A stretch of 64,000 nucleotides of DNA, from assembly GCA_964019335.1 (NCBI GenBank), contig OZ025653.1:372001-436000 (forward strand). The letters run 5' to 3'. The translations under genes were made by a program, and so were the position numbers. Each line of letters starts with the position of its first letter. The first letter of the stretch is position 1. Source of the DNA: Diplonema japonicum. Taxonomy: Eukaryota > Protista > Euglenozoa: Diplonemea. Positions 3,361-51,432 of the stretch are shown here, piece by piece. A model generated the notes under the pieces. It ran no database searches. It was given only the letters and a program-made list of their open reading frames with translations, and was not told the DNA's origin.

Positions 3361-3815
3361 TTTTTTTTTTTTTTTCTTTCTTTTTTTTTTTTTCTTCTTG
3401 CGATGATGAAATTTAGTAAAAATTAAAAAGTAAAAAAAAAAAAAAAAAACAATCAATATCCCCCCCCCCTTTTTTTTAGTTTATTTCCCCCCATTCTCTC
3501 TCCTTCTGACCCCTCATTTCTTTCTTTTCTACTATTGAGGAAAGGTTAACAACGGATCAAAAAAAAATCTTGTGATGATGGGTGGGGTGGGGGGGAGTTT
3601 AACAACTGCCCTCTGTTGCAATCGCAACAGTCTGCTTAGTTAGGTATCGGGTGGTATAAGCCCCCCCCCCCCCCCCCCCCCACTTAAAGAAAAAGAAAGG
3701 GGACAAGGCTGACGGAAAGAAAAAAAATATACAACAGCCTCTTATTCACAACGAATTATAGGGGGGACATACACAACCATGAAGCTTTAATTCATATTTT
3801 GAAAAAAAAAAAAAA

Positions 3816-4275
3816 TAGCTATTTATTGCCAACAAATAATGAGTCATTATTTAACTCGAGTTCCCGAATTTTTGCACGAGGGCCCTGCGGGCCCTCGTGC
3901 TAAAAAACAGTAACGAGTGTTAAATAATGGCTCATTTGGCGGCAAGTAAGTCGTTTTATTTTTTCACTTTTCGTCATTTGAGTCACTCACTCTTCACTGC
4001 TTTCACTGCTGTTTTTTTTTTCACGCAGGTCAGCTTTTTGGGGATTTTCCTAAGGTAATACAGGGTAGCTATTTCGCCGTGGCATTTAAAGTGAACACTG
4101 CACCACCAATGATACGTCGCAACCTAAAGGACACCAACGGTCTTCGGGCCTGGAGCTTTTTCCATCAATAATTCGTGGACGGGCACGCCCCACGAAAAAA
4201 AAAGGGATGCTGTCCCTCATCGGGCTCATAATTTAACTCCGTGTGAGAAATTTGGTAACTTGTGTTAAATTACTT
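3816..4275 (+). mobile_element. Crypton-like non-autonomous element A (hairpin end intact, distal end not found)
   Basis: Starts TAGCTATTTATT. Terminal hairpin has a perfect tip, gcacgagggccc-tgc-gggccctcgtgc (3874-3900). 3930-4091 is nearly identical to element B (13396-13552). Right boundary is uncertain. Confidence 0.75.
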
Positions 4276-4598
4276 ACCCATTTTGGCACCAGCCCCTTTT
4301 TCTTCTCATTCACTCGGTGCAAGTTGCGCAAAAAAGAAAGAAGGAAAAAAGCGAGAGGGAGAAAAGAGGGGAAAGAAAAACACGTGTAATTTGAAGGATA
4401 AGTGTTTCTTTTTTTTTTTTTTTCCCCTCACCATCTCGTTTTTCTTTAATTCATTTTGTTGACATATGCTACCTAATCCCTTTTTTTCACCCTCCCCCTT
4501 ACTTTCTTCCTTTACCAGGAGAAAAAAAAAATAAAAAAGAAGGGATTTTTATGTTACCAGCTCTTTTTTTTTCCTCTTTTTTTCTTCTTATTTTCTTT

Positions 4599-5332
4599 TT
4601 TTATATAACTCCAGTCAGATTTTCAAGGGTGGGAGTGAATATAATATTTCACATTATTTCACGCTTCACTTTTCAGGCTTGTTTTAGGAAGAAAACAGGG
4701 GCAGAAATGAAAATTACTTTATGAGTGAATATAAAGTACTTTATATTCACGCTAGCCCTATTTTCACTGCACAGCAAGGGGTCGGGGGCGAAAACACGGA
4801 AAAGGAATCACCTAAGTGGTAACCACACAGGCCCTTGTTTTGGAAACCCCGGTTCGAATCTGGGAATCTCACTTTTTACGTCACTCAAGGATCTGGTCGC
4901 CTCTCTCAACAGAAGGGGAGAGAGGTGGGCTTGGCAAGCCAGCAGCGGTGACAGCTGCTAGTGGGGCAACCTCAGCAACCCAGGCAGCAGCCCCACAGGT
5001 CCAGACCGAGGTCCTGTCAGCACCCATGGACGCACAGCCCGCACCACACAGGATATGCCTTGACAATCAATATCAACCATAAGCACCCCCAATAAAATTT
5101 GTAACTTGTAACTTGTAACCTGTAACCCCACCCTTTCAAATCTGACTGACGTTAAATAAAACAACGGATTTAGTGAAAATAGATCCGATTTTCACTTGTG
5201 GTGGCATGTTTAACTTGTTGATGTTACTTCACTCGCTTCACGAGCGAAGCGAGTGAAGTCATATACACTCGTTAAACCACTGCCACCACGCGTGAAAATC
5301 ATACGGTCTTATTTTCACTAAATAAATAGTTA
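4599..5332 (-). mobile_element. Crypton-like non-autonomous element C (same subfamily as E)
   Basis: Ends in AATAAATAGTTA, the reverse complement of the family terminus. Hairpin at about 5168-5325; long-range IR 4599-4634 vs 5128-5161; hairpin and IR align with element E. Confidence 0.85.
4806..5095 (+). pseudogene. Possible decayed C-terminal part of a tyrosine recombinase (NHLSGNHTGPCF..GSNLGISL...TININHKHPQ*)
   Basis: HTGPCF is two single-base changes from the YTGHCF box. It is followed by GISL, an Ala/Thr-rich tail and a TININ end. It reads toward the hairpin end, like the remnants in D and E. Confidence 0.4.
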
Positions 5333-5377
5333 AAACTAGCAAGCAACTCTTACTGGGGAGGTGGTACTGCAAAAAAA

Positions 5378-6112
5378 TGGCTATTATTAAATGAAAATCA
5401 GATAGCCTGATTTCACTTGTGGGGTCCCCTTTTTGACGAGTGATTTTACTTCACGAGCGAAGCGAGTGAAATAAAAAAACGAGTCAAAAGGGGACCCCAC
5501 AAGTGAAATCATGCTCTGATTTTATTCAATACTGCATTTTATTTAATGATGAGCTGCTCTCGAAAAGAATTTAGGTGCTAAGTGTGGCTTCGCTGCTGCC
5601 TGCTTGTAGCGGCGCAATGCGCGAGTCTTTACTGAACACGGTACTGGGTTTGGCATGATCAATTCGGCGAATTGATGTTGACGTTTATGTCAAACGTGAT
5701 TCTGTGCAGTGCTGAAGAAGTGGGCTGTGTCGAAGGGGGTAGGGCTGAAGGGGGCGTGGGTTTGATCGAGTGGTAGGTGCAAAACCTCTCTCACTCCTTC
5801 TTATAGGCATTTTGCTTGCCGTTGGAAGCGTGTCTTCCATCACAGCTTTAGCCTCTTTCTCGAGGCTGATGCCCTTGGCTCGCTTCCCGGTCGCCTTCGG
5901 TTTTCTTCCCATTTTGCTAGAAATGACTGTGGGCGTGAAATAAAGTACCTGATTTTCACGCCCAGCAAAATCAGCAACGTTTGGCTTAAAAACATGAGGA
6001 AAAAAATCGATACTTTATTTCACGCCCAGGTCTGAGCGTGAAATAAAATGAAACCTGATTTATATCTTCCGGCCTAAATTCTTTGAGAGAGCTGCTCAGA
6101 ATTAAATTAAAA
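5378..6112 (+). mobile_element. Crypton-like non-autonomous element D
   Basis: Starts TGGCTATTATT. Hairpin tip is ttcac-GA-gc-GAA-gc-GA-gtgaa (5450-5470). Long-range IR 5537-5575 vs 6073-6112; poly-A flanks. Confidence 0.85.
5659..5912 (-). pseudogene. Internally deleted remnant of a Crypton-type recombinase ORF (N-terminus plus C-terminal tail)
   Basis: Reads MGRKPKA...EKEAKAVMEDTLPTASK, then after a frameshift AYKKE*ERF, resembling the LP-x-S-K-x-Y-x3-W-x2-F N-terminal motif I recall for Crypton recombinases. Ends ITFDINVNINSPN*. Confidence 0.55.
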
Positions 6113-6617
6113 AAAAAAAAAAGAAAAGAAAAATCAAAGCGCTACTGGTCCCGGAAAACGAGCCTGCCCAGACAACAGTCTATAGATAACAGGGGGGTTT
6201 CCTTCACTGGGCAGTAACTACTGCATTAGTTTTTGCTCCACTCCATGTCACCACTGCTCTTGGGGGAAAAAAAAGGAGAAAGAAGAATAAGAACGATCTT
6301 TTGAGTCTTCTCCCCCCCCACTTTTCTTTTAATCGCGCAATGGGCCTTGGAGAAAAAAAAAATAAGCATTTCACGCTCTGTTTTTTTTTGGGGGGGGGAA
6401 TAATGAAAAGTTCATACAAATAATAAAAAAAAAAGACGGAAAAGGCAGGGCAAAGAGGTTTCCCCCCTCCTCTGTTCTCTCTCCTCGCCTTTTTCTTTTT
6501 TTTTTCTTTTCTTTTTTTCTTTTATAATACCGTATTTGGGCTCATTATGAAACGGAAAAAGAAATCTTCCGAATCCGATGTGAAAAAGACTTCTTTCCAA
6601 AAAACGGGCCGTGATCT

Positions 6618-6653
<36 letters not shown>

Positions 6654-6795: not shown

Positions 6796-6848
<53 letters not shown>

Positions 6849-7283
6849 ATGCACAAAAAAAAAAGGGGAGGAGAAGTTTAATACAGTAAGGATTATACAC
6901 TTAGCAAGGGCATTTCAAAAAACAGAAAATAAAAAAAAAAAAGAGACATTTAAGCAAAATAAAATAAAATAAAAAAAGAAGGGGAACTTCTGACACGACC
7001 TTTTCTCAATTCCTATTGTTGGTTGGCCTGATGCGTAGGTAAGAAAGTAGTGTGGCATTCGGAAAGGGGCAACAAAACAAAACAAAAAAAAACCTCATCT
7101 TCGCCTTGGTTGAGTTTTAGAGTCCCCGCTCACCACGACACAACTACAGTCACTGGAGGGGACGGGGGGTCATCTAAATAAAGAATTCTCTTTGACTTAT
7201 GTCTTTTTGTTATTTCGCACTAGTAACAAAAACCTTTTTTGGGAACAAAAAAGAAAAAACCATTTTCTTAACCCCTGCCCCCA

Positions 7284-13369: not shown

Positions 13370-13852
13370 TAACTATTTATTGCCAACAAATAATGGCTCA
13401 TTTGGCGGCAAGTAAGTCGTTTTATTTCACTCTTCGTCATTTGAGTCACTCACTCTTCACTGCTTTCACTGCTGTTTTTTTTCACGCAGGTCAGCTTTTT
13501 GGGGATTTTCCTAAGGTAATACAGGGTAGCTATTTCGCCGTGGCATTTAAAGGGGAAGTAAGGCACTTATTCCCACTTTTAAGGGCTGGAATGGCCTCAG
13601 ATGGCCAAAAATAGTCAAAATACCCCCACCCCAAAAAAATTTTTCAAGGGGTTGGGTGCATTTTTTTCCACGACAAGACCCATTTTTTCACTCTGAAGGG
13701 CCATTATTTAACTGCAAAATCTCATTATTTAACTAGTTAAATAATGGCGATTTCGCGTTAAATAATGGCCGTTTCGCGTTAAATAATGGCCATTTCGCGT
13801 TAAATAATGAGGCCCCTAGTGAGTGAAGAAAATGACGAAGAGTGAAATAAAA
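13370..13852 (+). mobile_element. Crypton-like non-autonomous element B (subfamily of A; hairpin core deleted)
   Basis: Starts TAACTATTTATT. Perfect 23-bp IR 13420-13442 vs 13830-13852, extended across a GA/GA mismatch. High identity to A; A-tract flanks. Confidence 0.85.
13736..13809. repeat. 21-bp tandem repeat (GTTAAATAATGGCnnTTTCGC, about 3.5 copies) inside element B
   Basis: GTTAAATAATG at 13736, 13757, 13778 and 13799. Confidence 0.9.
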
Positions 13853-14057
13853 AAAAAAAAGCAACCCAAACAACACGCACACGAACGCCAAAAAAAAAAA
13901 AAAAAAAAAAAAAAAAGGAAATTGGCAGCAAACTTAAAACTTACTTAGGAAGAGAAAAAGAAACGAAATAAAAAGCAACAAAAAAAAAAAAAAAAAGGGT
14001 AGGAAGGAAAGGTGGCAGGATTGGTTTCTCTTTTTTTTTTTCTTCTCGTTCAACATT

Positions 14058-50672: not shown

Positions 50673-51379
50673 TAGCTATTTATTAAGTGAAAATAAGATA
50701 GCATTATTTCACGCGTGGTGGCAGGGGGTTTAACGAGTAGGGATCTTAGTTCACTCGCTTCGCTCGTGAACTAATATCCTGTTTACTTCACGAGCGCAGC
50801 GAGAGAAAAGTAAAAAGCTACGAGTTAAACCTGCCACCACAAGTGGAATAATGCTCTTATTTTCACTAATACGTTGTTTTATTTAACAAGAGCCGGGTTT
50901 GAAAGGTGGGAGGTTACAGTGAAAAGTAGGATTTGGGTTACAGGGTGTGGGAGATACACCGTCGCTAAATTTCAGTTTGTGCGACTCTTTGTCCTCATCC
51001 CGCTTGCAAACATGCAAGCTGCATATGCCTGACGCACTATGTTGTAGGGGTCGCTGAATTCCATTCAGATACTCTTTCATTTGTTTCTGACTAAACACCA
51101 AAGCTTTTTTTCACCTCATGGACTTCTTCAAAAGAAGTGCAACCCTGGGAAAGCTCTGCATTTTTTTACCGAAGTTTCGTTGGATGATGTAACTTGCCCT
51201 AAACCTAGGTGAAATAGGTGAAATTAGGCCCAGGAGTGAAATAATGTTACATTATTTCACGCTCGAACATTATTTCACTCGTGGGCCTAATTTCAAGGTA
51301 ACTGGGAGTGAAAATAAAGCTGGGAGTGACATTGAGTAAAATCTTATTTTCACTCCCACCCTTGAAAACCCGGCTCGAG

Positions 51380-51389
<10 letters not shown>
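50673..51389 (+). mobile_element. Crypton-like non-autonomous element E with a Y-shaped terminal hairpin
   Basis: Starts TAGCTATTTATT. Two-armed hairpin; IR 50877-50911 vs 51354-51389; carries a tyrosine recombinase fragment; poly-A right flank. Confidence 0.9.
50961..51194 (-). pseudogene. Frameshifted central fragment of a Crypton-type tyrosine recombinase
   Basis: Stitched across frameshifts it reads SYIIQRNFGKKMQSFPRVALLLKKS/HEVKK/ALVFSQKQMKEYLNGI/SDPYNIVRQAYAACMFASGMRTK/ESHKLKFSD, which contains the YR box-I pattern G-x-R-x2-E-x3-L. Confidence 0.75.

Positions 51390-51432
<43 letters not shown>

Follow-up and report, generated by a model that had tools for sequence, protein, structure and literature searches.

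Cryptons are small transposons with a single open reading frame (ORF), the product of which is a PF00589 recombinase with a complete catalytic set, and they carry no reverse transcriptase. To our knowledge, the movement of Cryptons and of other eukaryotic recombinase-only transposons has been inferred by analogy, and neither an end structure nor a substrate has been defined for them. The Cryptons described so far have no terminal inverted repeats (TIRs) or long repeats, and only direct terminal repeats of 4-6 bp (PMC3212892). Here we analyse element D, which lies in a stretch of 64,000 nucleotides of Diplonema japonicum (assembly GCA_964019335.1, contig OZ025653.1, positions 372,001 to 436,000, forward strand; hereafter the window). 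Element D has lost internal sequence and belongs to a superfamily of Crypton-like DNA transposons that are very small, at 0.7-1.7 kb. The family is previously undescribed, and no report of Crypton-like elements in Euglenozoa was found in the literature searched.

Folded DNA is part of several other systems. In integron attC and CTXphi attP one strand folds, so that the recombining joint comes to lie within the intrastrand duplex, and the structure is conserved while the sequence drifts. In the model for the DIRS elements, an internal complementary region splints the termini on a single strand. Hairpins of parvoviruses such as adeno-associated virus (AAV), and poxvirus telomeres, are imperfect terminal palindromes that occur in two inverted forms at about 1:1. 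The physical properties of the motifs considered below are also documented. CGAG blocks contain tandem sheared G:A pairs in stable DNA hairpins, as determined by nuclear magnetic resonance (PMC10085684). The oligomer GCGAAGC melts at 76.5 °C, and GCGNAGC mini-hairpins are nuclease-resistant, whereas hairpins with TTC loops are not (PMC13037366); the stability of the GCA loop depends on a C:G closing pair (PMC3201870).

The reading that we favour, and to which we would give an even chance, is that D belongs to a group of hairpin-ended tyrosine-recombinase transposons, the end features of which have been kept by selection since the DNA folds on itself during the life cycle. From the mismatch and inversion patterns described below, selected intrastrand folding of DNA appears likely, and by analogy a single-stranded substrate of the attC/CTX type is possible.

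Structure of the element ends

Genome-wide, D is present at about 45 loci with 83-95% identity, and its ends were defined from 30 copies (5' TAGCTATTTATTAAATG; 3' ...CAGAATTAAATAAAA). At least six subfamilies (B-G) were recognized, all of which start with TA[G/A]CTATTTATT and end with AATAAA followed by an A-run. The plus orientation of the elements is taken as 5' T(A)GCTATTTATT ... AATTAAATAAAA 3', and coordinates without a locus number are those of the window. The ends of D are built as follows.

5378-6116, plus strand: element D, non-autonomous copy of a tyrosine-recombinase transposon
5378-5389, plus strand: 5' terminus, here TGGCTATTATT; family consensus TAGCTATTTATT
5385-5531: terminal imperfect palindrome of 147 nt with arms of about 70 nt, from foldback alignment and DNA fold
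5437-5440, plus strand: left half of the outer CGAG block (C-GA-G), partner 5480-5483
5452-5468, plus strand: palindrome apex CAC-GA-GC-GAA-GC-GA-GTG, in which a d(GCGAAGC) mini-hairpin (5457-5463) carries a stacked CGAG block
5480-5483, plus strand: right half of the outer CGAG block, partner 5437-5440
5537-5575, plus strand: IR-L, internal arm of the long-range inverted repeat (IR); GA at 5548-49 and 5562-63, central T at 5555
6073-6111, plus strand: IR-R, 3'-terminal arm of this repeat; GA at 6085-86 and 6099-6100, central T at 6093

IR-L follows the palindrome directly and is 85% complementary to IR-R over 39 nt. The mismatches come in the order T/T, GA/GA, T/T, GA/GA, and those located are GA/GA at 5548-49:6099-6100, T/T at 5555:6093 and GA/GA at 5562-63:6085-86. 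A long-range IR was found in B, C, D, E, F and G, and its start is always TTTTATTT paired with AAATAAAA; the repeat of F is 48 nt long with a single C-GA-G / C-GA-G mismatch. Across the family the palindrome measures about 150 bp and the subterminal IR 30-50 bp. A preliminary description of this DNA had quoted a set of such pairings, and all of them are present: the long-range IR and hairpin of D (5537-5575:6073-6111; 5437-40:5480-83; 5452-5468), the IR of C and E (TTT-GA-AAG with CTT-GA-AAA), the stem of E (TAAC-GA-GTAG with CTAC-GA-GTTA) and the IR of B (CATTT-GAG with AGA-AAATG).

Tandem G·A mismatches and hairpin tips

In all subfamilies the left arm of the palindrome was aligned with the right arm, and the internal arm of the IR with the 3' end. 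Among the two-by-two internal loops in palindromes and long-range IRs of six subfamilies, about 20 of about 29 were 5'-GA/GA or its flipped form TC/TC, as compared with an expectation of 2/144 for each random tandem mismatch. This difference excludes chance even when homologous loop sites are collapsed to about six independent ones, and the earlier statement that the mismatches are not random was thus borne out. Within palindromes the context of GA/GA is always C-GA-G, which by its letters corresponds exactly to the published CGAG block. Within the IR, the distance of GA/GA from the end is about 12-13 and/or 25-26 nt in each of the subfamilies despite differing neighbours.

In C, D, E and F the tip sequence is GC-GAA-GC or GC-GCA-GC, and in B and G it is GGGCCC-GCA-GGGCCC. 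The apex core listed above for D is common to the four former subfamilies. The loop at the apex is GAA or GCA, in most cases with C:G as the closing pair, and in single copies it is GCC or GCG. The high stability of GA/GA and GCGAAGC in single-stranded DNA (ssDNA), to which the preliminary description had appealed, is documented (PMC10085684, PMC13037366, PMC3201870).

With respect to strand, GA/GA of the long-range IR is always located opposite to the recombinase gene, that is, on the plus strand, in all subfamilies. The outer blocks of B, C, E and G likewise carry GA on the plus strand, except in E_L018, which is repaired, and in C_W, which is mutated. Related copies in the window are the following.

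4597-5332, minus strand: element C, related subfamily; IR with GA/GA on the element's plus strand, apex TC/TTC/TC on that strand
50673-51389, plus strand: element E; palindrome with a TC/TTC/TC and a GA/GCA/GA inner mini-hairpin as read on the plus strand
3816-4092, plus strand: element B1, palindrome end of a B-subfamily element
13370-13861, plus strand: element B2, non-autonomous B copy with the palindrome centre deleted; IR CATTT-GAG pairs with AGA-AAATG

Covariation between C and E had also been proposed. The 8-nt core of the IR indeed differs at four positions between the two, all of them compensated, although pairing is here inseparable from shared recognition by a protein.

Inversions and deletions at the palindrome centre

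Aligned copies of D were found to differ by inversion of palindrome segments. Form 1 of the outer segment reads GAC-GA-GT-GAT on the left and ...AAA-AC-GA-GTC on the right, and form 2 is its exact reverse complement. The 11-nt tip, GAGCGAAGCGA, is present in both orientations, independently of the outer segment. Orientations were read from the assembly only and counted for D and F with exact patterns over the whole genome, anchored on the asymmetric outermost arm; flip counts of C, E and B rest on few copies. The counts were as follows.

D left outer block: GA on plus strand 6, TC 6
D right outer block: GA on plus strand 10, TC 5
D tip: GA on plus strand 7, TC 8
F tip: GA on plus strand 2, TC 8
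F outer block: GA on plus strand 16, TC 0

In D, the tip and the right outer block are found in all four combinations. The tip orientation varies among copies of E and B as well, and B shows all four flank states. IR-R, by comparison, was flipped in none of 30 D copies. In a tree built from the non-palindromic body, the flip states of D are scattered within a shallow clade, indicating that flipping is fast relative to substitution. In addition, about 10 of the 30 D copies (L012, L014, L015, L019, L021, L024, L026 and L028-L030) have lost the palindrome centre through symmetric deletions between short direct repeats, for example CTGATTT; such deletions are typical of slippage across a hairpin. 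Taken together, the flips and centre deletions have the form of changes that hairpin formation in living cells produces, and they add support to the claim of intrastrand DNA folding. Small inversions of 4-50 bp at hairpins are known as common spontaneous events in plastomes (PMC12371153).

These results confirm the initial observation in part. The preliminary description had proposed a folded ssDNA specific to one strand, with the GA-bearing strand opposite to the recombinase ORF. What holds is that selected, structure-specific mismatches recur in six diverged subfamilies, and that a dedicated strand can be recognized in the IR half, the arms of which never flip, and in the outer blocks of B, C, E, F and G. 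A single strand for the whole structure does not hold: the tip is not assigned to one strand in any subfamily, nor is any part of the D palindrome, and the apex of C and the first inner hairpin of E read TC/TTC/TC. Judged by the refuting condition that the preliminary description itself had set, GA/GA is also no commoner than TC/TC at the tip and left outer block of D, where the ratio is about 1:1. The one-strand reading therefore applies to half of the structure only. The occurrence of the tip, and in D of the outer block, in both orientations is new in this analysis, and the GA strand is not fixed there.

Folding of the joined ends

For each subfamily, the last 60 nt were joined to the first 180-270 nt and the construct was folded. 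In B, C, D, E, F and G the joined ends gave one long hairpin, in which the IR stem continues into the palindrome stem and the end-to-end joint adjoins an internal loop formed by TA[G/A]CTAT. As the internal arm is complementary to the 3' end and stands next to the palindrome, joined or juxtaposed ends can form one long single-strand hairpin. For the palindrome of D, the predicted DNA fold energy was -46.9 kcal/mol on the plus strand and -48.9 kcal/mol on the minus strand, with z at about -14 for both.

The recombinase gene and autonomous copies

At least 31 matches to PF00589, the tyrosine-recombinase family, were found in the genome, and several adjoin the same kind of terminus. Autonomous copies of B type (L051, L054, L055 and L056) are 1.66-1.70 kb long and encode recombinases with 99% identity, and the B-type family therefore looks recently active. 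Their ORF is on the strand opposite to the TAGCTA-to-AAAA direction. In three of the four it has about 437 codons and spans all 426 aligned residues, and in L051 the frame has 429 aa and the alignment covers 415 residues. The ORF of L054 (2321-3634, minus strand) matched PF00589 with 36.1 bits (cut-off 27.1). The B-type protein contains the catalytic residues R201, H308-x-x-R311, W334 and Y343, and R201, H308, R311, W334 and Y343 are invariant among homologues. F-type copies (L052, L053, L060 and L061) have the same layout within about 1.4 kb and a related recombinase gene of about 320 codons, and in each of the four copies read, stops or frameshifts disrupt this gene. Each autonomous B or F copy has a single ORF, and neither reverse transcriptase nor RNase H was found in them. 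The minus strand of element E shows weak similarity to the F-type recombinase.

The B-type copies differ from each other in the length of the A-tail and in the palindrome centre, which is GA..GCC..GA, collapsed or deleted. The intact autonomous copy at L054:2126-3834 (G000:C36) is located near telomere-type 8-bp repeats and a long interspersed element (LINE).

The nearest clusters to the B recombinase in a protein atlas were eukaryotic recombinases with DUF3504 or ALOG domains, and only four distant homologues from elsewhere were found. By protein content the family is Crypton-like, and the DUF3504/ALOG neighbours are a lead only.

The interior of D contains two further features.

5685-5912, minus strand: ORF remnant of 75 codons with start MGRKPKATGKRAKG, at the position of the recombinase gene start in autonomous relatives
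5930-6048: subterminal small inverted repeats of GCGTGAAAT motifs (repeat family D9), without GA/GA mismatches

The former had been taken for a recombinase ORF, which could not be upheld: sequence comparison of its 75 codons with recombinases gave no significant similarity. D itself has lost its recombinase gene, the orientation of which was deduced from the autonomous B and F copies. The GCGTGAAAT-motif repeats are probably recombinase-binding sites.

Comparison with described systems

The family shares with Cryptons the single ORF, the PF00589 recombinase with its full catalytic set, the small size and the lack of a reverse transcriptase. Unlike Cryptons, it has the 150-bp terminal palindrome, the 30-50-bp subterminal IR, the conserved TAGCTATTTATT terminus and insertion at A-tracts. 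Its ends thus depart from the published definition of Crypton ends, and flanking A-runs of variable length hide any short direct repeat.

As in attC and CTXphi attP, two inverted imperfect segments would fold on one strand, with the joint beside a mismatched region, and divergent stems retain the same hairpin plan, mismatch type and tip in six subfamilies. Those systems are bacterial and their strand is set by extrahelical bases, whereas tandem G·A marks the strand here and half of the structure flips between strands. With the internal complementary region of DIRS1 the family shares one continuous internal segment complementary to both termini, a possible single-strand splint. In DIRS elements, however, the single strand is a product of reverse transcription and the termini are long inverted terminal repeats (ITRs), whereas here only a recombinase ORF is present, with no reverse transcriptase or RNase H. 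The imperfect terminal palindrome in two inverted forms recalls parvovirus (AAV) hairpins and poxvirus telomeres, and the two inner arms of the E type resemble a T-shaped ITR. The viral systems employ HUH nickases or telomere resolution on linear genomes; in the diplonemid family there is a tyrosine recombinase and one palindromic end, and, unlike in the viral hairpins, inner and outer segments flip independently. The family is thus like none of these folded-DNA systems (attC/CTXphi, DIRS, parvovirus) in its enzyme or genome. The CGAG blocks and d(GCGNAGC) mini-hairpins are identical to the published motifs (PMC10085684, PMC13037366, PMC3201870); these have been described in a human promoter repeat, at origins of ssDNA phages and in engineered oligonucleotides, and are not known to form part of transposon ends.

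A model for the folded ends

Motifs of stable hairpins at the ends, together with a tip that is flipped in about half of the copies, suggest that the DNA probably folds on itself in the cell. What folds might be a single strand that is excised or exposed, or a small circle that forms a cruciform. The recombinase would probably use the fold to bring the ends together and would then, probably, recombine them into A-tracts. The IR half of the fold is proposed to be strand-specific, with its purine·purine mismatches on the strand antisense to the recombinase gene. No such specificity is proposed for the palindrome half, in which the tip, and in D the outer block, often inverts, a presumable signature of hairpins in vivo.

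On a more speculative level, the family may represent a eukaryotic DNA transposon with a tyrosine recombinase that acts on self-folded DNA, a proposal that we regard as tentative and rather doubtful. The internal segment would in this case splint the joined ends as a long hairpin, stiffened by CGAG blocks and bearing the GNA mini-hairpin, and the logic of integron attC and CTXphi would be combined with a flip/flop of the tip as in parvoviruses. If true, it would suggest that recombinase elements already used the trick of the DIRS internal complementary region before they captured a reverse transcriptase.

The family offers recently active intact copies (four, 99% identical) together with natural variants of the end, namely flip, flop and repaired forms. 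Since the ends use documented ultra-stable motifs of single-strand DNA, the hypothesis can be tested at low cost; if confirmed, it would link bacterial recombination on folded ssDNA, DIRS retroelements and Cryptons.

Alternative explanations

Several observations weigh against selected folding. The proposed intermediate, whether single-stranded, circular or cruciform, is deduced from sequence rather than observed, and the evidence for flipping is at the level of the assembly. Single G·T versus A·C mismatches, examined as a strand marker in the aligned subfamilies, showed no bias. Perfectly paired variants exist for the outer block (D_L007, E_L018) and for the inner block (B_W, B_L053), indicating that the mismatches are not indispensable for persistence in the genome. 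No palindrome was seen at the four metagenomic loci of distant recombinase relatives. In the nearest-neighbour DNA model both strands fold equally well; comparison of energies was therefore rejected as a means of choosing the strand, as the model includes no terms for CGAG and GNA motifs, and the argument for a strand draws on published biophysics, not on computation. Finally, the duplex junction of a circle, AATAAA(A)-TA[G/A]CTA-TTTATT, is in every subfamily a near-perfect palindrome of 18-20 bp with inverted arms and a 6-7-bp spacer, and thus looks like an ordinary recombinase core site, whereas in the folded form the helices flanking the joint are direct repeats. Inverted arms with a spacer of 6-7 bp are the canonical layout of recombinase sites (PMC3212892). 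This layout, the equal energies of both strands and the ambiguity of the C/E covariation, which is equally expected from shared protein recognition, make a classical double-strand cycle with an accessory palindrome a serious rival, even if we hold it to be somewhat improbable. A Crypton-type double-stranded circle would be formed, and its duplex junction, AATAAA-TAGCTA-TTTATT, and A-tract targets would be the sites of recombinase action. The palindrome and IR would be arrays of protein-binding sites like TIRs or arm sites, in agreement with the repetition of GTGAAAT-type motifs in both ends; GA in direct orientation would only distinguish the arms or block harmful arm-to-arm recombination; and the flips would be hairpin-associated micro-inversions without function, as the spontaneous 4-50 bp inversions of plastomes (PMC12371153) would allow. 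Such a cycle leaves unexplained why GA recurs as an asymmetric dinucleotide in about 20 loops of differing context, why the C-GA-G context is strict and the GNA tips are closed by C:G, and why one continuous internal stretch is complementary to both ends. Even if the ends served for protein binding alone, it would have to be explained why CGAG blocks are used so strictly.

A stricter version of selected folding holds that only the strand antisense to the recombinase gene folds and is the sole substrate, as are the attC bottom strand and CTXphi (+)ssDNA. The purine·purine tandem mismatches of the IR lie on the antisense strand in six subfamilies and in all D copies, and the outer blocks carry GA there in 16 of 16 F copies and, apart from E_L018 and C_W, in B, C, E and G. 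The D outer block (6:6), the D apex (7:8) and the F apex (2 GA to 8 TC) nevertheless disagree, the apex of C and the first inner hairpin of E in the window carry the mini-hairpin on the other strand, and with only five or six lineages the bias of the IR can be explained by shared ancestry; we consider this version improbable. More improbable still is that the folding molecule is RNA, a plus-strand transcript or read-through. The plus strand ends with AATAAA and an A-run, and tandem sheared G·A in the C-GA-G context is stable in RNA as well. Three-base GNA tips closed by C:G are, however, a stability motif specific to DNA (PMC13037366, PMC3201870) and not GNRA or UNCG tetraloops. In addition, the only gene runs on the minus strand, no Rfam family came near the gathering score, the region is absent from the runs on record as RNA, and flip/flop is a DNA event.

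Insertion sites and neighbouring copies

The 5' end of D adjoins an A-run in about two-thirds of the 30 copies, and the 3' end passes into an A-run or unique DNA. All integrated left junctions with an A-run keep AAATAGCTATTT. A sharp 5' and a fuzzy 3' boundary in A-runs, with a fixed orientation to the A-rich strand, would fit strand exchange inside the A-tract. Insertions were also found directly behind the A-rich 3' end of another element (D then E in L002, C then D in L010), which would again fit exchange in A-tracts. Head-to-tail tandems were considered as evidence of circle integration, and this line was dropped, as a single D-to-E junction was found genome-wide.

A short interspersed element (SINE) or other retroposon was suggested by the flanking A-runs and the 3' AATAAA. 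This was rejected because the autonomous relatives encode a tyrosine recombinase only, the sharp 5' end does not vary between subfamilies, and in many copies no A-tail follows the element's own AAATAAAA. One observation is left unexplained by this rejection. L054 is flanked by a 17-bp direct repeat, AAAGGGGGACTTGAGAA, which begins directly after a T-run; from its sequence it looks like a long target-site duplication, which integration by a recombinase into an A-tract does not predict.

The window, which is nuclear DNA of the marine diplonemid, has long homopolymer runs and ORFs mostly on the minus strand. The long runs are preferred landing sites of the transposon family. Pure intergenic runs are located at 6619-6650, 6797-6850, 51386-51431 and 3664-3682 (about T32, A50, A45 and C20, respectively). 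Read in the sense of the recombinase, B, D and E lie in T-tracts and are co-oriented with neighbouring long minus-strand ORFs, whereas C is not; the elements might be expressed from polycistronic transcripts of the host. B1, C and D, which belong to different subfamilies, are packed into 2.3 kb of the window (3816-6116). A further degenerate subfamily, H, with the terminus TAGCTATTTAATGCC, was detected at L053:5880-6100 on the minus strand, tail-to-tail with a G-type copy.

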